Below are positions 2,249 to 46,745 of a stretch of DNA of 64,000 nucleotides, one piece after another. The position numbers were made by a program, and so were the translations under genes. The DNA comes from Rhodosorus marinus CCMP1338 (Eukaryota > Plantae > Rhodophyta), in assembly GCA_029953675.1 (NCBI GenBank), contig JAMWBK010000003.1, positions 930,001 through 994,000 of the forward strand. The letters run 5' to 3'. The stretch's first letter is position 1. Each line of letters begins with the position of its first letter. The notes below the pieces were generated by a model that saw only the letters and a list, made by a program, of their open reading frames with translations, ran no database searches and had not been told where the DNA came from.

Positions 2249-2962
2249 TCATGCAGGGAATCCAAGTTCACTGAGCTTTATGTGAGATTCAATGTAGTCC
2301 GCGAAGAACGCACCCTCGTCCTCAGCATAGGTTGTGACCAACTTCTCAAGCTCCGGCTCGTCGCATAGGGCCTTGTCAGAGTCCAACAGGAGTAGCCCCT
2401 TGGTGTCACCGTTGATGACGTTCTTATAGTATTCGTTGTCGAAAACAAGGGGCTTGGTGGTCCATGCACCAACGAAACCAGATCGATCCTTATGCGCGGC
2501 TCCGAGACAGTGGGCTCCGCTCAGGACGACGATGTCCTTATCGCTGAGTCCCATTCTGTAAAAGACGTCGCGCAGATGAGGCATTCTCTTCGTGGCATCC
2601 GGGAGTCGGCCGTCGTTAGTGCATGCTTCGCTATCGATTCTTCCAAATTTGAACGGAATCACCGGACCACCAGCGGCCTCAATTGCGACCACGGATGCAA
2701 GCTGGTAAAGATCTGCGTAGCTCACAGCCGGATACTTGGCATGGAACGGCTCCAAGAAATCGACCGCCTTTTTCAATCCCGCGTTGGCACCGTGAAGGAT
2801 CTCGGGCTCGAATCGAATGGAAGCATTCGCCCCGCCGGTTTTATCCTCGTGATTGTAAGTACCAGCGTCGTGCCATGCCAACCTCACCAGGAGTGGGTGG
2901 CAAGGTACCTCAGACAAGAATGTCTTGATATCCTCTCTCAAAGCAGTCTCAAACTCCACCAT
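2249..2962 (-). CDS. APX: Ascorbate peroxidase (class I heme peroxidase, cytosolic type), intronless
   Basis: Distal motif RLAWHDAGTY; GGANASIRF; proximal GAHCLGAAHKDRSGF with the ascorbate-binding Arg; WT..PLVFDNEYY. Confidence 0.95.
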   Translation of the reverse strand: MVEFETALREDIKTFLSEVPCHPLLVRLAWHDAGTYNHEDKTGGANASIRFEPEILHGANAGLKKAVDFLEPFHAKYPAVSYADLYQLASVVAIEAAGGPVIPFKFGRIDSEACTNDGRLPDATKRMPHLRDVFYRMGLSDKDIVVLSGAHCLGAAHKDRSGFVGAWTTKPLVFDNEYYKNVINGDTKGLLLLDSDKALCDEPELEKLVTTYAEDEGAFFADYIESHIKLSELGFPA

Positions 2963-4497
2963 CCTTGTTCTACGCCAAAGAACTGATTACAACCGCCTCC
3001 ACAATGAAAGGATACAACTAGAAAAGTAACAAGAGAATTTTACAGATAAGCTCTGCGAACACGATGATCAAGTAACCTCCAGACTCTTTCTCGCATCGCC
3101 CTGCCAGCTAGAAGGTTGCTGGTCAGCTACACCTTTTATACACTGGTGCAATCATTTTAAGGTCTATTCACCCAGAAACCCGGGTCCTCCATCCAGTATA
3201 AATAGAAACTTCTACCCACCTCCTGATGGCTCTACCTATTTACATGTCCCATTCTCTTCTACCCCTGTACACTCACAACTATCGAATATTATATGAAAAT
3301 ATATAATAAAATAGCGTAAGGGGGGGTAGAAGGTGAAGAACTTGTTTCACTTACAATTTTCTCCATCTATTGCACCCCCCTTAACATTGCATTGGATTTT
3401 CTCACATGCTATTCATCCATTCCATCCACAAATCCTATTTCTAATTTCTTGGTCAAAAATGAAGGGGAAATGATTCCTGATAATTGATTGGTAAACGTAG
3501 TCGAATGGGGAGTGATACTACGGTTTGATTAGTAGATTTAATGTCATATAAACATTATTTAACCAATTAAATTATACAAACACGTTATGTCTAGTGTTAA
3601 GTGTTTTTATTGGTAGAACATCGCAACGGGCCGTGTGGCAGGTCCTGTTGGTTCCAGTCGGGTTGGAAAGGGAAGGGAGGGGGAAAAGGGAAGCTGGTAT
3701 TGTTTCGATACATACTTCTGGGAAGCGACTAATAATTCTCTGCTTGGGTGGTGGTTTTGGTTGAAGTGACGAAGTCCTCTTCTCATATGCTGCTTAGAAG
3801 AAGAAGTTACATATCGGATTGTCAGTCAGTACGAGCTGGTTGCTCTAAACATTTACGAACAGCGCTCGTGCAGAAAAATTACCGTCGGAATCTGCTTCCA
3901 AACGTTGAGCCCAGTTGCCGTCTCTTCAGTCAGCGAGATCTGGACACTACTCCTCAGACTCTGTTATGTGTTGCTTTTTCAGAGGCTTGCAGCGGCCAGT
4001 TTTTTTTGGGCTGCTTTGATTTCCACCTCGTCCGCTGCGTGATCTGGAAGAGGGCGCGCGGGATCCAATGCTTTGTCATGCCGAGAACGCAGCGAAGTTG
4101 ATGAGTCAAGGGACTATGCACACGTAGCTGACCGGATCAGGTAACATCTTACTGCTTCAGTCTCACTGCGGAACAGCTCTTCCTGGTAAAGCCGTTTCAA
4201 AGCTCAACGTCTATCCAAGTTTCACGAGAGCCGACGACATCTAACCTTCACTATGCCCGGAAGCTCAATTCTTTCTAAATTTCCGGGGACAACGTGAAGC
4301 GTTCGACTTTGATTGCGAACGCAGTCATCTTTCGTCCAATCGATGCATTGTGTTGACCAATAATGACTGATAAACCTGTTTCTAGGAAAATATAATTGAG
4401 AATTATAGTTTCGGGTTTGTGCGTTTGATATGAGGACATCAGGCTGAGGGACAGTTGACTTGCGGGAGAAGTGTGGAGACAGGGGCTCAATGAAAAC

Positions 4498-31589: not shown

Positions 31590-32760
31590 CCGTACATCTA
31601 TCAGGACAGCTTCCAGCCTTGTGTCCTCACCACGCCGGGGCCTTGCATTGAAGAATCTCTCCTCCATTCCCGCAAATGGGTCCAGTCTCGCAGCCCAAAC
31701 CTGACAGCAAGTGCAAGGACAAGGCGGTGGGCAGGAGAGATTAGCCGAAAACTCTGCATCCATTCCGACGTGAGGCACAAATGATGATGCTGAATGTGCG
31801 TGCGGAAGGAAAACAGAAATAAACCGGGCTCATATCCTCTCCCGTCATTTCTGACTCCTAATGCTTGACTATGAAGACAAACTTTGTGTTTAAGACTTGT
31901 GATCCTTGGGTCTTGCTTCTGCCCCTCCGTTGAGTGCTGACATAGGGAAGTCAGTTCCTCCATCATTGCCGACCTCCGCAGCTCATTATCCGGGCTCGCA
32001 AAAGCTTCCTTTAGATTCTTCAGTCCCGGGTGCTCTTCTGTATTTGTGTGCATGACATCACCTGCCGCTGCTGCATGCCGTAGCTGACCCGTTCTCGGTG
32101 GGCTCATGACTTGTGTCCTGTGGCAGGTTCTCACTGCTATCTCTCATCAACTTCTCTGCCATTGGCCCGGCAGTATTTCCTGTAGCCTCATGGGCGTCAC
32201 GTGCCACGGCTTCCTTCACGTAGCTAACCTCGACGACTTTACTGAAGATGTAGTTTTGACCAAGTAGGTGTCCAAGAAAACCGTAGCGAACCCTGGTTGA
32301 GTACCCTCCGTCAGCCAATACTCCAAACTCCTACAACGCCTCTGATTCCAACAACTCCACAGGTTTGAGCCCAGGTGGAAAAACCTGTGGAGTTGTTGGA
32401 ATCTGAGGACACTAGAAAAATTCAAGCCAGGCTCGATCACCTACCGCTCTGTCAGAACGGGAGGACCGCAACAATTGAACGCCTAAAGATAATCCCCGTC
32501 GAGTTTGCCCAAGTCTTCCCAGAAACTCGGAGCTCGTGCTAGCCCTCAAAAGCCACACACTCAGTCCAGTGAGAACCTCAACCAAACGAATGTCGCCCAG
32601 GAGAAAAAGAAAAAAACTGACACCAAAAGCTGGGATGGTGTCTTTTTCTTCTTCCGGCAAACGGCCACTTCTCCACACACCACCCTGTGGCGTTCGGGGA
32701 GGGCTAAAAGAAAACAAAAAAAACCTGATTGTCGAGTAATATCCAAAATCGAAGTCAGAC
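31590..32760 (-). CDS. Probable multi-exon hypothetical protein; model unresolved
   Basis: Coding-like frames DIRLVEVLTGLS...SRSDRA|EFGVLADGGYSTRVRYG... joined by a GTAGGT...TTGTAG intron (32331-32444), plus HPGLKNLKEAF...SLKHK|VWAARLDPFAG. The join near 32060 needs a frameshift or a weak intron. Confidence 0.3.
32339..32408. repeat. Perfect 23-bp inverted repeat (28-bp stem with 1 mismatch, 14-nt loop)
   Basis: GATTCCAACAACTCCACAGGTTT (32344-32366) is the exact reverse complement of AAACCTGTGGAGTTGTTGGAATC (32381-32403). Confidence 0.95.
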
Positions 32761-32918
32761 ATAAAAAAAAACAAAAACACCCACTTACAAACCCAACCGA
32801 AGAAAAAATTTGCGGGGTTGTGGCGCATCCCCTTCAATCCCTTACCTTGCCCACCGCCCCCCCAAAAAAAAAAAAACAGAACGGGGCTCAAATTGCAGAA
32901 ACGCAACAACCTCCCTCG

Positions 32919-33124
32919 GATCCCTTGCCGAGCAAAAGAAAAGAAAAGGACACCTCTTCAAATGGCCAGAGCGGCATCGCTGGATCCATTGCCGATGGCA
33001 ACAAAAAAAGGGGAAAAAAACAGCTCTTTTCAAATGGCCAGAGCGGCATCGAGCGGGAGGTCCCTTGCCGAGCAAAAAAAGAAATAAGGCACAAGTTATC
33101 ACGAAATAAGGCACAAGTTATCAC
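32919..33124. repeat. Degenerate ~70-bp tandem units plus an exact 22-bp tandem duplication
   Basis: TCCCTTGCCGAGCAAAA at 32921 and 33061; CAAATGGCCAGAGCGGCATCG at 32959 and 33031; GAAATAAGGCACAAGTTATCAC twice (33081-33124). Confidence 0.85.
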
Positions 33125-33715
33125 CGCGCACTGTTTTTCAGGCTATTTTTTTTTTTACATCATATCCAATCGAAGAATTACTACTGTCAGCATGCCCTGG
33201 TGTAAAAAAACTCATCTTATCCAAATATCGTTTATTATTTTACATAAATACACTATTTATCCTATTATCCCCAAAAAGATAAGGTGGGGGGGGAAAATAG
33301 CTTTCAGCCGATGTACGTTGTACCAAAAAAAATGATGTTGGAGATATGCGTTAGAGGAAGTTAAGAGTCATCTGATTATTCAATCGTTCTACCTATAAAG
33401 GATTAATTTTAAATAATAATTAATATTGAGGATTTATTGGATTGAATATTGTAGTGACGATTAAAGTGGTGTTTAGGGTCTCGAATTGATGTAGCGAGCC
33501 TTGTTGGGATGGTGATGGTGCGGGAGTCTGGCTGCGAAGTTGGAAGGGTTTTGGCTGATGTAGAGGGAGGGTTTGACCCTATATGTATATGTGTTTGTTG
33601 TGCGTTGGGCAGGGTGGATGGAGAGTGAAGGGGGACTAAGTAAGGTTTAAACATATATTGAGAGTTGAGCGGGTTGTTTTTTGTTTTTGTTTTTGGTATT
33701 CGTGTACATTTTTGA

Positions 33716-33919
33716 ATGGATGTTGCTTTGATTGTGACGCTTTGCGTCATTGGAGGCCTCTTGCTCATTGCTTTTGCCATCTTTGGAGTGCAGAAGACGA
33801 TCGGTGGGATTGTGAGCGGGACACAGTTTGTTGTGAATGAAATTATTTGGGGTATACCGAAGACGCTGTTGGGCAGTCGGGAGCGGGAGAAGCAGCAGGA
33901 ACGGCAGGCATATGGTTAG
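33716..33919 (+). CDS. Putative 67-aa single-pass membrane microprotein
   Basis: MDVALIVTLCVIGGLLLIAFAIFGVQK...: an N-terminal TM helix, an amphipathic middle and a charged tail. A G/T-rich leader upstream matches the other genes. Confidence 0.5.
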   Translation: MDVALIVTLCVIGGLLLIAFAIFGVQKTIGGIVSGTQFVVNEIIWGIPKTLLGSREREKQQERQAYG

Positions 33920-34452
33920 TTCCTCGATTTTGATGAACGCAATGCAGACGCTTTCAGTTGTTTTCTGAACGTTTGATCTTTTCGGAATCTTCTGCTTATG
34001 TTCAATAGCGAATCCATATCCGCATGGGAAGGAGCAATCATGGTGGGAGTGGTTCACGAGTTGGTTCTCCGGATAGACAGTGGTATAGACAGTCTTGGCA
34101 GTGGATTTTTGCGGAAGTTTTAATTTCCTGATTCCAAGACGGCGCACCGCTGCGGAGGAATGTAGTCGGATACCTGTCGAATTTGGATGAAAAGAATCGT
34201 ATGACAAGGGTTTGTTTCTATCGAAGGGACACCTGATGCTGGAGTTACTTTTGGGGCTTGTCGGGGTGTCTGCTGTTTCGTACAGAACTCCGGCGTATTG
34301 TATTTAAGCCTACCGACAAGTAAAAGTTGTTTCCGAAACTTTGGAGTCGGTTTTATATGTACTTAGGCGTCAGTTTTTTATGTACAACAAGCATGTCTAG
34401 CTCTTGGCTACGAACAACAATGTGAGCACATCTTTGCTTGATACCTTATCAA

Positions 34453-34632
34453 CTAGCTCAACCTCCCGTCGCTAAGAGAGCTTCTCTGCAGCTCATCCTT
34501 TGACTTCTTCGCCTCCTCCAGTAGCTTATTCACCAATCTGTCCGCATGTTCACGTACTCTTGCTACCTGCTCGTCACATTCTCTTCGGAGATATTCCTCA
34601 ACGCTCATATCCACAGTCCGCTTTTCCGCCAT
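34453..34632 (-). CDS. 59-aa coiled-coil microprotein resembling the Survivin/Bir1/BORI C-terminal CPC helix
   Basis: MAEKRTVDMSVEEYLRRECDEQVARVREHADRLVNKLLEEAKKSKDEL; the ATG sits in a GCGATGG context. Confidence 0.6.
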   Translation of the reverse strand: MAEKRTVDMSVEEYLRRECDEQVARVREHADRLVNKLLEEAKKSKDELQRSSLSDGRLS

Positions 34633-35830
34633 CGCAAAAGTTTGGAACTTTTCACTTCCGAACTGAGTGCCAGCTTTCAATTCTCCTGCATTGACCACCA
34701 AGAATCGCAGAGCACGACCTTTGATGCAGCCCCAACTTCCCTCTGGGCCACTTTGCTGCCCATTACTTCCACGGCCGAACACTCATGAACATCCAAAACG
34801 AACTACAGAAATTCAAATCTTTTTCGTAACGGCAAAAGCAGAAAATTCAATAAGTTTATTTAAATTCGTTTGTTTCAGGGTGGGAAGCTAGCCTGCGTAC
34901 AGTTTTTAAATTGGGATGTACAACATATACGCTCTTGCACACTTTTCGATCGTTCGGCAAGTCAAAAAGGAATAGTCACGCGTCTTGATGAATGAGCTAC
35001 GTACTGGAGGAGGGCAAGAGGACAAACGATGAGCTCCAGATAAGCTCTCTCAGGGACTTGATGATGTTAACACTTTCTCAACTGGTGGCTTTTGTATGTT
35101 TTACGATTCTTTAATGGATTTGACAAATGGTTTTAGTTTTAGTTTGTCACCGTTCGCTGGATCTGGACTCGGAAGGAAAACATGTCCTCGTCGTACTGGA
35201 CGATCCCGCCATCATTGGGTTCGTTGTCAAGTATTCGGATGAACCTCTTGTTGCACGCAAGGCTGTCGGAAGCTGCGCAGAGACTGACAGATGGCGCTGG
35301 AGCAACTAGCGGGTCAGGTACAGAGTTTTGCGTGAAAGTACTGGATAGCGCAAATCTTACGTGCCTAGTGGTTGTCTCTAGTACCACAGGCCTGGCTGTT
35401 TAGCGCGCCAAGATATCAGGATTCCGAAAGGGCACGAAAATGTGACCGTAGGATTGCGAGGTTGTGCAGAGCGTCTTGTTTGTACTTGATTTGCGCTTTG
35501 TGTATTGTTGTCATCTTGTCTCCGCTGTCCGCTGTCAAGAATAACTTTGGAATAATGTGAGAGCAATCCGGGACGGAGACGCCGCTCTCACATTGCTTCA
35601 ATCACCTTATGTAGATAGGTTTATTTACTCCCACCTTCACATAGAAAACGGTTTTACTGGTTGAAGTCGGTTGGAAAGCCCAAATTACAATACATGGCAT
35701 ACACTATGTTGCTCGTGTCGTATTGTTGAGGCATTTGTAAAGAATCCAGTACGGAATCAAGAAAACAGACTCTTTCAAAATGTTTGCGGCAAGCTGGCGA
35801 ACAGAGCATAGTGCACACAGTAACCCGTCG

Positions 35831-36007
35831 ATCGCAAGTGTTCTGCTAGTTTCACGATATATCAAACCCTTGCAAAGTTAAGAAGTAATCTTCGTGATGC
35901 GTTGCCGGAGCATAGTGCCCCCAGTAACGTGTCAATCGCAAGCGTTCTGCTAGTTTCGCTATAAATCAAATCCTGGCAAAGTTAAAAAAGAAATCTTCGT
36001 GATGCGT
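35831..36007. repeat. Direct duplication of a ~72-bp segment (period 104 bp) spanning the YIPF6 stop codon
   Basis: ATCGCAAG(T/C)GTTCTGCTAGTTTC...GCAAAGTTAA...ATCTTCGTGATGCGT at 35831-35902 and 35935-36007. Confidence 0.9.
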
Positions 36008-37079
36008 CCCCTTCTTCGAGTATCACTTCGTCATAGTCTCCGACATCAGTAGCGTCTGCGGGGGTCTCGCCGGCTTGCGCAGGTGCCTGGCTATCGGCGG
36101 CAACTCTGTTATGCTGTTGGAATCCGATTAGAATCATCCAGGCTACGCTTAAATAGAAAAGAAGCACAGGATATAGAGCAAGCAATTTCCTTCCGTCCGG
36201 AAACCGCGCGTCAGCCATGAAGCTGGAAGATGCTGTTCGTTGAGGAATTAGGCAATCGTCAGCGAACACGACCCTGTTGCAAACTTTCGTTGGGACAAAC
36301 CTACCCCAGATTGACCAGCTCAAGGCTATTACAACTGAAACGAACTGAAGAATCTCTGCGATAGTGCCTCCGATCACTTTGTTCCAAAGAAAGCAAAGGC
36401 CGGTGCTTATCAGCAGCGGAAAGATGCAGTAGCCGAGCAGGCAAAGCGTCTGGAAGAACGATCTGTGCAGAGCAGGGGAAGCGGATGAGTTTTGCAAATC
36501 ATCAGAAAACTCAAGGAAGTGGGTTCAGATAGAATGGAGCTGCAAAAAAAAAAAACCAACATTTTTCCGCCTAGCAACTGGGCATTGATCGTCACTACTG
36601 CAGAACCCGCCCAGACGACTACGAAAATTACTGAGAACACTAGGCTTGCGTCATCGTTTGCTACAACACTTAGAATGATAGCCAGCGACATGCAGATGAA
36701 AAGCGGTCCCCACAGTTCCCAATCTCGAAGCTCAGCTTGGATCTGCTCCTATAAACGACGAAAAACCAGTTGCGGCCCCGGGGAGAGAAAGACGACTTAG
36801 TACACATACGACCGCAAAGCAAAAAATCTCGAGGCATAGCTCTTACCGTGGACAGCCCAGGTAGCACAACCAGCTTTAGCCTTCTACCGACCTGGATTGG
36901 ATCATCAGAGGAGACAACAGACAACGAACGGACTTCAGCCCAAGGCAAATCGAGGACGCAAAACAGCACTCTCACTAACATCCACCTACCTGAATAATAT
37001 CTCGCTTAATCGATTCCCAGACAGATTCATCAATTGTAGAATCCAAAGTACTTTCTTGCATTTCAAACGGATTTGCCAT
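35982..37079 (-). CDS. YIPF6: Yip1-domain Golgi protein (YIPF6-like), 5 exons
   Basis: TIDESVWESIKRD, LRDWELWGPLFICMSLAI, FVVVWAGSAVVTINAQLLGG, SFFQTLCLLGYCIFPL, LALYPVLLFY. Confidence 0.92.
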
Positions 37080-37799
37080 GTTTCCTCACCACCTGCAAAC
37101 CCCTCCACCCAAACCCCAGTTCTAACGATCCAAACAGCTACAATTCAAAACAAAACACGCTAATCTTCCACAGATATCCTCCTAAACATCATAACCCTAC
37201 TCCAAACAGAAAGATCCATCTCAGACGATAACCTAGGCGTTCCTATTCACCCTCTTCTTTCTAAATCGATCCCAAATCCATCCACAGTGAACTTCTTCAC
37301 CAGCACGTCCAAAAGCAACATAAACCAAATAATAAGAAAATCCATAAAAATTCCAATTGCCGAGTTTCTTGACGTGTGTCAAGACCGCTGACAAGAAATT
37401 TATTGGACAGGCTGTCCATTCAGAGTGGAAGAATTTGAATCTTAGCTTCTCCTTGGTCTCAGACTATGATCGAAAGTCAAGGTCAGAGCGAGCTTATGAA
37501 GGATAACGGGCATCGGGATGCCATAGCCATAGCTGACTTCACGGCCATGGAAGATCTACTTCAACTGGGAAAAAGATCACGAATGAGGCGACAGGCCCTG
37601 TCAAGCTGTGCCTTGCCGTATTGGCGCATCCGTTCAAGATGGTAGCCTGAAGCGACCGCCACTCCTGTAGCTTCAATCGTAATACCAGTGAAATTAGATC
37701 TTCGATCGCCGAAATGAACCTTGACTTTCGATCAGGAAAATGAAGTAAATTTCCCGATCTTCAGTTTGTAGGTAGTCCTTCTTAGTCCGTTAAGCTTCT

Positions 37800-40997: not shown

Positions 40998-43900
40998 ATG
41001 GACTCGCGCGATAGGGAGCGCTCGAAAAGAGGTAGGGAGCAGAGAAAAGCGTCTGAACGAAAGGACAGACGAAGACAAGGAACGAGTGGGGAAATTTCGG
41101 CTAGTCGTACAAGCGACGGAATAACTACGAACAGTAGAGCCGCTTCGGGTACTGGTACCGGACGGAGTCGCTCTACTTGTGCGCCCAGCTCTTCCACTGC
41201 GAAAAGGAAAGCTCGCGAGGTGAGGGGCTTCTACCCTGGCGCTCATTCGCCGCCGGGCAGGTCTCAAGATCCTCTTTGCGCACCTACCGGAGCGTTGAAG
41301 TTTTCTCGAGGCGAAGTGGAAGCGGAAGACAAGAAACCTGTCTCCCCTGAGAGGAACACCCGAAGCAGAGGTGAATCAGTTGTTAATAGTGAGAAGCCGA
41401 CTCTGAAGCAGACACCGGTGCGGAGAGGTAGACGGAGAAGGTCTGGTGGATTACAACGTGAGGAGAAGAACCGAGAAAACAAGCGTCCGCGCCCAGATAG
41501 ATCGCTGATGGAGCCAAGAGCTGGAAGCAGTGCGAACGATATTCCTATGAACCCTGATGATGACGGACCAAGTTCTGGTGACAGTGACCGCGGAGCAAGC
41601 GCCCTTAAGGGTCTCCTACATAGGCTTAGTTCGGTAAGATTAATGGATATGGTTCTCTTCAGGTTTCTGTCGGTAGCTATCATGCGCCTCAGAGCTGTGT
41701 AAAGAGTATCCCCCTACGCAGTCTTCCGTACGGGGCACTTCGTAGAGGTTCGTTGTGCAACACAGCTTGGGCGGTAATTAACGATTTTTGTTTTTCGCTT
41801 GCTCTCTGTTCCGTGTATTCTGCAGGGTTTCGACGACCTGCTCCCTGGAGGTGATCCCGGATTTTCAATGGTTCGGAGGATTCTTTCTATTCTGAACACT
41901 CCCTCAGGGGACACTCGAAAGATCCAGGCACTGACCGAGCTCTGTGAGCTAATTTCAGTTGGCACGGAGGAGAGTATGTCATCACTGTCCGTGGAGGCCA
42001 TCGTCCCCGTAGTGGTAGGGCATTTAGGCCCTGAGAACTCCCCTGATGTAAGGTTGCTGGCCGCTCGAGCTCTAACGCACCTTATGGACGCACTCCCGGC
42101 GTCTAGTGCGATCATTTCACACAATGGGGCGGCTGTGGCTCTATGTGCAACTTTGCACGCCATTGAGTACATTGATCTTGCCGAACAGTCTCTGTACGCG
42201 TTGGAGAAGTTGAGCGTCGATCATTCACAACCGATAGTCCGCGCTGGAGGATTCGCGGCTGCTCTCGTATTCTTCGATTTCTTTGCGCTTGGCGTTCAAA
42301 GGATTGCAGCGTCGCTGGCGTGCAACTTGTGCCAAGGAACACCTGCCGATTGTTTTTCCATGGTGATGGAAGTTCTTCCAATCTTTTCCGTGTTGTTGGA
42401 GTCTGAGGACCAGAGGATAAGAGAATCGGCAATGTGCGGATTCTCTAAACTTACTGATTCATTTAAGAGTGATTCGTCAAAGCTTATGACCATCTGCGGA
42501 ACTGACTTTGCCTTGTTGGACAAGACTATCAGCTTCATTACTGCGCTTTCGCCTACAAAGCTGTCGTCAACTGCTTTTACTGCGGCGCTGAGGATGCTGG
42601 GAATTTTTGCAAGGTGGAGCGCGGAGCTGTCCGAGGCAATGCTAGAAAGAGAGACCTTGCTTTTGGAGCTCAAGAGACTTGTTCAGGACATCTCCTCACC
42701 GGGAAATCCTGAGAGCTTGCTAGTAGCGGAATCGTTGCTACCACCCAGAGATATACAAGAGGATGAGGAGCTGAGCAAGCTTCGGAGGACAAAGGGAAGC
42801 CTTTCCAGCGGGGCGTTATTTACGAGGGCCGCTGCTGCGAAGCGAAAATTCCTGACGGAGAAGCCGCAGCTGTTGCAAAACTTTGGGGACTGTCTTTTCA
42901 AGTGCCTTTTATCGAACATGGATAGTTCTATAAGCTTCTTCCCAAAGAAGATCACTGTTTCAACATTGGCTAAATTCGTTCACAATGCTCCCGCGAATGT
43001 CCTAAATAGTCTGATCGTCTCAGGCGAAGTGATCGACTCTGAGAAGCAGGTTCCAACAGCACAATTTGCGTCTCAAGTGGCCAGCCTTTTGGGAGAGAAT
43101 GGGTTTTCGTTCGAGTTGATCGCTGGGATAGTCTTGCTTTCCTCTGCACTTGAGAAGCTAGGTGGAGAGTTAAGAATTTTGTTGATAAGAGAAGGAGTGT
43201 TGCATCATTTGCACCGACTTGCAACACTCGGTGGAGATAAGGAAGACGGAAATGAATCGAAAGCCCAAGGTTCTGGTAATGGGATGATCGAAGGTGTTGA
43301 CACTGAGAAGGATAGAGGGTCATCATTTTCGAAGTCCAAGAACGACTACATTGGGAAGACGTCAAGGTCAATTTTGTCGATGTACTATAGCGATGAGCTT
43401 ACCGCGAATGAGACCGCTGTGTTAACAGAATTCAAGGAAATCCGAAATCGTATGGAAAATCAAGAATCTTTCGAGGAGCTTCTGGCATCTCTCTCTCGTT
43501 TCAACGCAATGCTCAGCGGGTCGCAGGGAATGACGACCTATGAGCTTAAGGAGAGTGGTCTTATTGGTGCCCTTTTGAACTTCTTTGAGGCTGACGGTTC
43601 TGATTCACAGAAGCTAGACCGGTTAAAGATGTTTCAATCATGCTTTGCAACACCACAAAAGGAGTCCTTTGCGTTGCTTTGCGATCGCGTGTATGGCGTA
43701 CTGGCTGCGGAGGATAAGTTATCTGTATCCGTCAACGAGAGCTCAAGTGGGAATATGGTTTCTATTGCCTCGGGATTGCGGCAATTGACTCAGCCAATAA
43801 AGCTCAGATTGAAAAGGGCTCCACTAGGTGAAGGCGGCCAGCACTTGGAGGATTATTCACACAACGTAGTCGTAATCGAACCCTTCACGACGTTTCGGAG

Positions 43901-46745
43901 TGTTGAAGATTTTCTCTGGCTCCGTGTGAAGACTCCGGAGGCCGTGAACGTTATATCCGAGAAGTTGAGCGGGTCAGGAGCGGAGGAGAGACGAAGAGAA
44001 TCGGCCGAGCAGGAATTGGTCCATGAAAACATGTTTGAGGACAGCGAAGAGATTGTGAATGATGGCGTTTTTCATATCGAAGATGAGGATGATGACGACG
44101 ACGACGATGACGATGATGATGACGACGACGACGACGATGACGACGACGATGATGACGACGATGATGACGACGACGGCAATGATCCTCATCACGACGCCGG
44201 CTTTGAAGAGGAAAACGAAGATATGGAAATTGATAATGAAGACGAAGCATCTGCCGATAAATCAGGGTCGGAAGAAGGGATGGATGATGACGTGGATAAT
44301 GACGACAATGATGAGCTGAGCGTGGACACGGATGACTTTGGAGTTGAGCATATGGGTACGTCTTTGCCCGTTATCGAGCTCGACTTGGATCGTGTGCCAT
44401 CTCGTGGAAAGTCTCCAAATAGCAGAGTCTCTCGGGACAGTGTCCGAGATGGAACTGGCAGCTCCTCCTCGCCCAAGTCGTATGCAGCGGTAGCAAGCGA
44501 AGGGGGAAGCTCCTCCGGGCAAGCTCAGCGTGGTTCATCGAATGCGGAAAATCATGGCCATCAGTCCGCCGAAAAACTTGTCATCATGTACAACGGATCC
44601 AAAATATCTCGTGACTGGACAATTTTCCAGGGCGTTCTTTTCAAAACGAGAGCCGCGCGCACCGCAGAAGGTCACATACATAGCCATCATGGACGCCATA
44701 GTGGGAGGACTTGCTCGTACTTGTGGGAAGACATTCACACCCTGACATATGCACTTAGCACGGAGGTTAACCCCGAGGAAGCTGCGGAGAAAGGAGATGC
44801 TGTGGGATCCGAGATTGCAGACATCAAGACGGATTTCCCGGGCGTCTCGGAGCATTGGGTTAGAGTGGGCGATTCGAGAGCTCAGTTGCCGTCCTCGAAA
44901 CCGCTAGAGGACTCCTCCGATGAGATGCGGGAAACTATCCAGTTGTGTCAGTACTTGCATTGGGTAAATATTCACGCTGCAGATTTGAGCAATGAAGTAA
45001 CCTCGCAGCTACTACCAGAAGCTGCATTTGTAAGTAGGAGCTTGACAGGGAAATTGTTACGCCAGCTCTCGGATGCGATTAGCCTCTGCGGTGGTATGAC
45101 CCCGAAGTGGGTGTTTTCTGTGGCAAGAAATGTACATTTCCTTTTCACTTTTGATGCTCGACTGTCGCTTTTACAGTCCACGGCACTCGGGCTCGCGAGA
45201 ACACTTCACCGGCTGCAGGAACGGGCGGATGCGGCAAACGCCAGCGGCGGCGGTCGCAGTTCAGGCTCGCACCGTGAGGGTGTTAGACGCATAGCCAGAA
45301 TTCCTAGGCAGAAAGTCAGAATCGACAGATCTAGAGTACTCGAGTCGGCTTACGAGGTTATGAGCATGTACTCGAGCTACAAGAGTATGCTGGAGATTGA
45401 GTACTACAGCGAGGCTGGAACTGGCCTGGGACCAACACTAGAGTTTTATACGATGGTTTCGCGAGAATTGCAGAGGGAGGAGTTGGGTCTTTGGAGAAGC
45501 AAGGGGACGGTGAGAGTCCCATTGAGTAATGACGTGAAGTCGCTCCCGAAACTTCGCAGCAGAAGCAAAGCCTCAACTGAGGGATCGAAGAAAGCCTATG
45601 TAGAGTATATCGTGTCCACATCTGACGGCCTGTTTCCGTCACCCTTGGCCGGAGGGGAGTCGAAGGCGATCACTGCTGTTCTCGCGGCTTTTCGTTTCCT
45701 GGGAAGGCTCAGCGGCAAGGCGCTAACGGATGGAAGGCTGTTGGATTTACGAATGTCCGACGAATTCAATAAGCTCGTACTCCTTTGTGCTGCTGGTGCT
45801 AGCGGGAAGGAACAGAAAGCGAGGACTCACGACGACTTCCTTCTGCCAGAAATGCCGTTTGTTGAGTACGATCTTCGTGCGCTGAGCTCTGTGGACCGAA
45901 TTCTAGCCAAGTCCTTGAACGACCTCAAAGCCACGGACAGAGCTCTAGTTGAAGACCTGTGCCTCTTCTTCGTGTTGCCTGGGAATGACGATATCGAACT
46001 CGTCAAGGGCGGCAAGGACAAGGCTGTGACGGGGGAGAACCTCGATTCATATATTCATGCGGTTATCACCTACGTGCTCTTCGAAGGTGTGAAGAAGCAA
46101 GTAGCAGAGTTTGTTGAAGGTTTCAACGAAGTTATGGATTGTGAGGTATTGCTCTACTTCCAGCCGCAAGAGCTTAATATGATATTCTGCGGGCCTGAAC
46201 GAGAGGAGTGGACGGTGCCATTCTTAACTCAATCGACAAGGTCAGTTTCGCCGTCTACACCCGCTCATAGTTGAGTTTTTCCCCTTTTTTTGTCGCCCAC
46301 TTAGCTCTTCGTCTTTTGAATTCTCTTCGCAGGTGTGACCACGGGTACACCCAAGAAAGCACGTCCGTGCTGAACCTCTTCAGAATTCTGTCCGAACTTG
46401 ATACGGAGGATCACCGGAGGTTCTTGCAATTTGCAACAGGTTAGCAGATCGTTAATATTTCTGAACAGTCCTTTTTCGAACAGGTCGCTAACTCTCCAAG
46501 TCGCGAATACGTTTCCCGGAACAGGGTCCCCGCGTTTGCCTGTTGGCGGTCTTGCCAATTTACAACCTCGACTAACTATAGTGAAGCGGACTCCCGAACA
46601 GGGTCGGTCCGTTGACGAAACTCTACCTACAGTTATGACTTGCACAAACTACCTTAAGCTTCCCGACTACAGCTCTATCCACATAGCAAGAGAGCGGTTG
46701 TTGTACGCCATTCGTGAAGGTCAGGGAAGCTTCGACCTCTCTTAG
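40998..46745 (+). CDS. UPL3: HECT E3 ubiquitin ligase, UPL3/TRIP12/Ufd4 family (ARM repeats + HECT), 4 exons
   Basis: [78 protein letters not shown], catalytic [22 protein letters not shown]. Introns at 41634-41825, 46241-46332 and about 46440-46524. Confidence 0.96.
44088..44174 (+). repeat. Poly-aspartate tract (29 consecutive GAT/GAC codons) inside UPL3
   Basis: An 87-nt run of mixed GAT/GAC codons. Confidence 0.95.

Follow-up and report, generated by a model that had tools for sequence, protein, structure and literature searches.

In Rhodosorus marinus, a red alga, an open reading frame (ORF) of 59 codons on the minus strand appears to be a genuine gene that the genome annotation has passed over, and its product would be essentially one amphipathic α-helix of 45 residues, homologous to the helix of the Survivin/BORI family and a would-be scaffold of the chromosomal passenger complex (CPC). 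We give this reading as a whole a probability of about 0.55, with its parts standing at different strengths: coding constraint on the ORF is observed directly, homology to the Survivin/BORI helix is moderately supported by sequence comparison, and a role in the CPC is plausible by analogy with known complexes. The ORF lies in a 64-kb stretch of contig JAMWBK010000003.1 (assembly GCA_029953675.1; PMC10250338), hereafter the window, and a first-pass annotation of this DNA that had read it as a minimal, helix-only CPC subunit is thereby partly supported.

The product is MAEKRTVDMSVEEYLRRECDEQVARVREHADRLVNKLLEEAKKSKDELQRSSLSDGRLS (59 aa), and the minus-strand frame that the first-pass annotation had described is present, with the string that it quoted being exact. 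Starting at 34782, the frame stays open as far as a TAG (34455-34453), with the first in-frame ATG at 34632 (Table 1), and the gene calls of the assembly include none at 34453-34782, which leaves the ORF unannotated. On the ORF Pfam gives only noise (CdiI_2 and MDMPI_N, both at E=0.1), and look-ups of the exact product in its 59-aa and 109-aa versions found no record. Elsewhere in the window, which is eukaryotic in content, the Pfam matches include an SMC hinge, a Yip1 gene, and a HECT ligase resembling TRIP12, and further ORFs read as GAPDH and as an ascorbate peroxidase, the latter having an exact match on contig JAMWBK010000003.1. The TRIP12-like HECT ubiquitin ligase ORF (41799-46274, plus strand; 1,491 codons) includes an unbroken run of about 30 aspartates. 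Convergent with the helix ORF is an annotated gene whose product starts in a hydrophobic stretch resembling a transmembrane segment (MDVALIVTLCVIGGLLLIAFAIFG) and for which no Pfam family is recorded. Two repetitive tracts also lie nearby, namely a tandem pair of 104-nt units (86% matches) at 35804-36007, which overlaps the 3' end of Yip1 and runs slightly beyond it, and a low-complexity A-rich tract at 32400-33400 with 72-nt and 22-nt tandem repeats; the lysine-rich and phenylalanine-rich long ORFs on both strands of the latter tract are probably non-coding repeat rather than genes.

Table 1. Features of the helix ORF and its neighborhood, in window coordinates.
Feature	Position	Strand	Basis
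Helix ORF, 59 codons and stop	34453-34632	-	Sequence, ORF list, homologs, coding-type conservation relative to L001
Upstream in-frame open stretch, 50 codons without ATG	34633-34782	-	ORF list; tblastn against P0001/L001
Predicted single long α-helix, codons 11-55, 45 residues	34468-34602	-	AlphaFold2; hhalign to Survivin ~93-135
MSVEEYL, codons 9-15, most conserved motif of the family	34588-34608	-	Eight-sequence alignment, hhalign, hmmsearch
Inverted and degenerate copy, 73 nt, of codons about 33-55 (3' third of the ORF)	34985-35057	+	Repeat search, local alignment
Yip1 gene	35982-37079	-	Assembly annotation
Annotated gene of 88 aa, convergent to the helix ORF	33716-34076	+	Assembly annotation

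The evidence for coding comes from a counterpart in another genome. A full HMMER pass (phmmer) of the ORF against 1.84e9 representative proteins gave four matches, the best of which, P0001 (E=5.8e-10), is encoded on L001, a genomic contig of 3.3 kb (Logan SRR22824290) on which a Yip1 gene is also present. The Yip1 exon of L001 is 86% identical in protein sequence to the Yip1 of the window, which points to a related alga as the source of this contig. Read from its ATG, the L001 ORF has 60 codons, MKDLTVVDMSVEDYLRKECDEQVAKIRRRAEELVTKLVEEKEKSKLELKKVADMRTSPSV, and its ATG and stop stand at positions equivalent to those of the window ORF. Over the first 50 codons the two products share 30 of 50 residues (60%); identity at the first, second, and third codon positions is 72, 74, and 42%, respectively, and pN is 0.26 against a pS of 0.79, with synonymous sites saturated. 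Together, the codon-position pattern and the pN/pS relationship indicate that purifying selection acts on a protein encoded in this frame. Outside the helix ORF nothing is alignable between the two loci, the Yip1 exons excepted, and these non-aligning flanks argue against conserved flanking exons. It is this conserved counterpart, with its amino acid identity and coding-type substitutions, that raises the ORF above chance, for its length alone does not: 47 ORFs of at least 30 aa occur across the 3.5 kb around it, so that 59 codons by themselves are no better than expected by chance. Word-indexed homolog searches recovered nothing with the 109-codon frame and only P0001 with a four-sequence profile.

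The coding region most likely begins at the ATG, with the open stretch ahead of it being a 5' leader rather than coding sequence. In tblastn comparisons the similarity to P0001/L001 fades upstream of the ATG, and the upstream stretch shares just a K-A-G triplet with them. A resemblance of a GPEGSWGC string in this stretch to a RanBP2 zinc-finger construct of Nup153 (E=1.3) was dropped: part of it falls on the tag-like GSSGSSG of the construct, the zinc-ligand cysteines are lacking, and the stretch is not kept in L001. The TGCAG acceptor that had been pointed out near 34690 does exist (34690-34686, minus strand), but an upstream exon spliced at this site is unlikely, as L001 has no conserved upstream coding sequence and the upstream ORFs have no domain match.

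Apart from P0001, the closest relatives of the window helix are longer proteins in which a helix near the N-terminus is followed by an FHA domain. Two of these, P0002 of 193 aa (E=1.3e-4) and P0004 of 216 aa (E=9.5e-4), were recovered in the same phmmer pass against 1.84e9 proteins; their FHA domains score above the Pfam gathering threshold and have the canonical GR, SxxH, and TNG residues. The remaining match, P0003 (1046 aa), was set aside as a repeat-summed artefact of ten repeated weak matches. Scanning metagenome contigs for the pattern of the four-sequence alignment added four more loci (L006-L009), each encoding ...DMTVEEYLRAQC... and then an FHA domain. All of these helix+FHA relatives, which come from metagenomes, are 33-44% identical to the window helix over ~45 residues. 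In the resulting eight-sequence alignment, five residues of the window protein (V11, E12, L15, C19, and E40) do not vary, and the window ORF shares with the helix+FHA relatives a motif at the helix start, (M/C)(T/S)VE(E/D)(Y/F)L...C. Within its MSVEEYL version, the V, E, and L are invariant in the eight sequences, and the counterpart in human Survivin is L96-T-L-G-E-F-L102. The contigs of L006-L009 are visibly G+C-rich and of marine type, and another helix+FHA contig (L004), 95 kb in length, is densely packed with genes.

In structural terms, AlphaFold2 run on the single sequence predicts one helix for residues 11-55, with a mean pLDDT of 88 and block pLDDT values of 95-99 in the core, a helix being an easy prediction. 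The predicted length is about that of the Survivin helix. In the Survivin/BORI family, the helix, of ~47 residues, is the defining feature (Komaki et al. 2022, PNAS, PMC9680938), and the window protein is modeled with the expected single, long, coiled-coil-forming α-helix.

For the comparison with Survivin itself, the human sequence was confirmed against PDB 1e31 (326.7 bits over 1-142) and used as the query for collecting tetrapod Survivins; the C-terminal helices of 12 of these constitute the Survivin helix set, and the comparison is thus with tetrapod Survivin alone. In hhalign, the eight-sequence family aligned with this set without gaps over 43 columns, placing MTVEEYL on LTLxEFL (Prob 64.9%, P=6.1e-5, score 26.4). 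None of 300 column shuffles reached this score (9.0 ± 2.0, maximum 17.9), and the reversed alignment gave 9.5. The six helix+FHA sequences on their own gave a Prob of 73% (P=3e-5), and the window ORF on its own gave a weak match (score 18.0, P=0.0033), for which a coiled-coil control of 93 59-residue SMC1 segments from the same genome gave 10.4 ± 2.6, with a maximum of 16.9. With an HMM of the Survivin helices, the scores were 26.6 bits for L007, 22.6 for L008, and 19.3 for both L006 and L009, over 46 ungapped positions in these four, as well as 9.0 for the window ORF (P about 1e-4 as a single comparison, Z=1), 8.2 for P0004, 2.9 for L001, and 0.3 for P0002; the L006-L009 proteins (19-27 bits) are thus far above the red-algal helix-only ones (3-9 bits). 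When the same HMM was run against the 2,915 six-frame pieces of the window, the helix ORF did no better than tie for first place (6.7 bits, E=1.8). In the hhalign register, the hydrophobic positions of the window protein and Survivin are in phase, namely M9/L96, V11/L98, Y14/F101, L15/L102, V26/I113, L37/F124, A41/A128, and L48/I135. The Survivin-type helix claimed in the first-pass annotation therefore holds up at the level of the family, which lies on the C-terminal helix of Survivin in the predicted register, and holds less well for the window ORF, whose own match is weak. We accordingly regard the similarity to the Survivin helix profiles as good for the family and, for the window ORF, as transitive through the helix+FHA intermediates, which on sequence grounds makes its membership in the Survivin/BORI family moderately supported. 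Such a situation has also been described for these helices by Komaki et al. (2022, PMC9680938).

Similarity between short amphipathic helices easily arises by convergence, and the ORF might encode a conserved helical microprotein with a different function whose likeness to the helices of Survivin and the FHA proteins came about in this way. This would account for the direct Survivin score of just 9 bits, for the Pfam noise, and for the outcome of sequence searches of the PDB, in which neither the ORF nor the four- and eight-sequence family profiles retrieved Survivin and all matches were to coiled coils and designed helices, at E>0.05. Nevertheless, convergence would have to produce helix+FHA relatives at E ~1e-4 among 1.84e9 proteins with a common invariant motif, and four of those relatives that match the Survivin helices in register and without gaps at 19-27 bits. 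In the hhalign comparisons, moreover, the shuffled, reversed, and natural coiled-coil controls all stay below the observed scores. We therefore consider it unlikely that the resemblance is convergent, and favor homology with the Survivin/BORI helix.

As to a phospho-histone reader, the first-pass annotation had stated that no BIR or FHA domain is encoded in frame, and this is upheld for the ORF; no reader domain is attached to the helix here or in the related L001. Pfam had no match for either domain in the ORF. A family-specific FHA HMM, which recovered its positive controls at 1.8e-38 and 8e-35, gave a best E of 7.2, far from the helix gene, in the six-frame pieces of the window and L001, and tblastn with the FHA parts of the relatives gave no match. 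An HMM of the BIR domain (from 12 Survivins) gave a best E of 2.7 at an unrelated place in the six-frame pieces of the window, a set that held no positive control, and it had no match on L001. Upstream of the helix ORF there is neither an in-frame ATG nor coding sequence conserved between the window and L001, and downstream the ORF stops 11 codons past the last aligned helix position. Hence, within the 64-kb window and L001, the protein is helix-only in two species: it lacks the N-terminal BIR domain that marks Survivin sensu stricto and the IAP family (BIRC5, fungal Bir1), as well as the FHA domain that follows the helix in the helix+FHA subtype.

The same data bear on whether the ORF might be only an exon, or a half, of some larger gene of Survivin/BORI type, with an FHA or other reader that is distant, spliced in, or encoded by a separate gene, such that the CPC would not be readerless. 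All the relatives found outside the red algae carry a C-terminal FHA domain directly after the helix, R. marinus genes do contain introns (e.g., the Yip1 gene), and at each of the two loci a GT stands just ahead of the stop codon (window, AG|GTTGAG; L001, AAG|GTAGCC). These candidate donors, however, sit at differing codon positions in the two species, which keep equivalent starts and stops and have no conserved coding segment on either side of the ORF; moreover, the family FHA HMM finds no match in the 64 kb or in L001, and the downstream space is taken by the convergent annotated gene. From the window and L001, we thus deem a larger gene quite improbable and favor the reading of a complete, helix-only protein.

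The locus also bears signs of rearrangement. The inverted copy listed in Table 1 matches 34468-34536 of the minus strand, lies ~350 nt upstream of the ATG, and is degenerate, with a 4-nt indel and stop codons ahead; its alignment score is 72, as against 19 ± 2 for the shuffle null. If both lay on one transcript, this copy and the end of the coding sequence would pair (641-nt fold, z=-4.7), giving a long stem. The copy was not found in L001 and is either a relic of local rearrangement or, possibly, an antisense or hairpin partner. The order of the two genes is likewise opposite: in L001 the helix (1145-1414) is followed by Yip1 (2509-3269), whereas in the window Yip1 (35982-37082) is followed by the helix (34453-34677), with both genes on the same strand in each case. 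This suggests a local rearrangement after the species split or differential loss following duplication, and since the same short ORF is retained in the two species, the helix-only state is older than the local rearrangement.

Such signs might be taken to mean that the ORF is the decaying remnant of a helix+FHA gene cut by a local rearrangement, or else an untranslated chance ORF: a frame-broken, inverted copy of its 3' end lies close upstream, its order relative to Yip1 differs from that in L001, and it is unannotated. The third-position-biased substitutions, the pN well below pS, and the start and stop kept in two diverged species point instead to ongoing selection, and L001, without any inverted copy, has the same short ORF. 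We therefore hold decay or chance to be very improbable as the explanation, and favor the reading of the ORF as a real gene.

The relationship with the helix+FHA proteins admits of a more speculative scenario. Stramenopiles and haptophytes have plastids derived from red algae, and the red-algal helix-only protein is closest to the helix of the helix+FHA type; conceivably, those lineages took the subunit from the red-algal endosymbiont and then gained the FHA domain, or the red algae lost it, and, as a separate matter, the inverted copy might act as a hairpin or antisense regulator. We regard these ideas as long shots. If the red algae had indeed lost the FHA domain secondarily, this would contradict the published view of the helix-only form as ancestral.

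That view derives from the survey in which short, helix-only Survivin/BORI homologs were reported from Rhodophyta, Amoebozoa, Discoba, Cryptista, and Metamonada, with this form proposed as the state in the last common ancestor of eukaryotes, and in which the layout of a helix followed by FHA is the type found in stramenopiles and haptophytes (Komaki et al. 2022, PMC9680938). The topologies seen here conform to that division: P0002, P0004, and L006-L009 show the helix-then-FHA organization, and the window ORF and L001 show the helix-only organization, in the lineage where Komaki et al. report it. Going by the published description, the window protein shares with the rhodophyte helix-only homologs the lineage, a single conserved helix (here 45 residues in 59 aa), and the lack of any other recognizable domain, and the present copy differs in being unannotated in the R. 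marinus assembly. It has the motif at the helix start in common with the helix+FHA type, but those proteins continue into the FHA domain where the window ORF stops. The plant BORI1/2 proteins belong to the same family by the published definition (PMC9680938), with their FHA domain preceding the helix. With animal Survivin (BIRC5, PDB 2QFA) the helix aligns ungapped to ~93-135 with ~15% identical positions; in Survivin this helix is C-terminal to the zinc-binding reader of H3T3ph, whereas the window ORF has no BIR domain and the helix is the whole protein.

In animals, the Survivin helix and the N-terminal helices of Borealin and INCENP form a three-helix bundle that holds the CPC together (PDB 2QFA, human core CPC). 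By analogy with this structure, and with the two-hybrid data of Komaki et al., we propose that the helix of the 59-aa protein may form an equivalent bundle together with the N-terminal helices of INCENP and Borealin. The protein would then be a scaffold subunit of the red-algal CPC that contributes the bundle-forming helix only, and the reading of centromeric chromatin would be left to other routes, such as contacts made by Borealin or INCENP.

The concept of a helix-only Survivin in red algae is already in print (2022, PMC9680938), and what is new here is an unannotated example from R. marinus, so that the gain is incremental. Routine annotation misses microproteins of this kind, and tables of CPC subunit presence and absence across eukaryotes therefore likely under-count them. 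Should the protein indeed hold the red-algal CPC together, it would be a concrete, 59-aa case of the helix-only Survivin that has been proposed for the last common ancestor of eukaryotes, in an organism with a genome assembly, and would offer a way to study how centromeres are found by a CPC in which no subunit reads H3T3ph.
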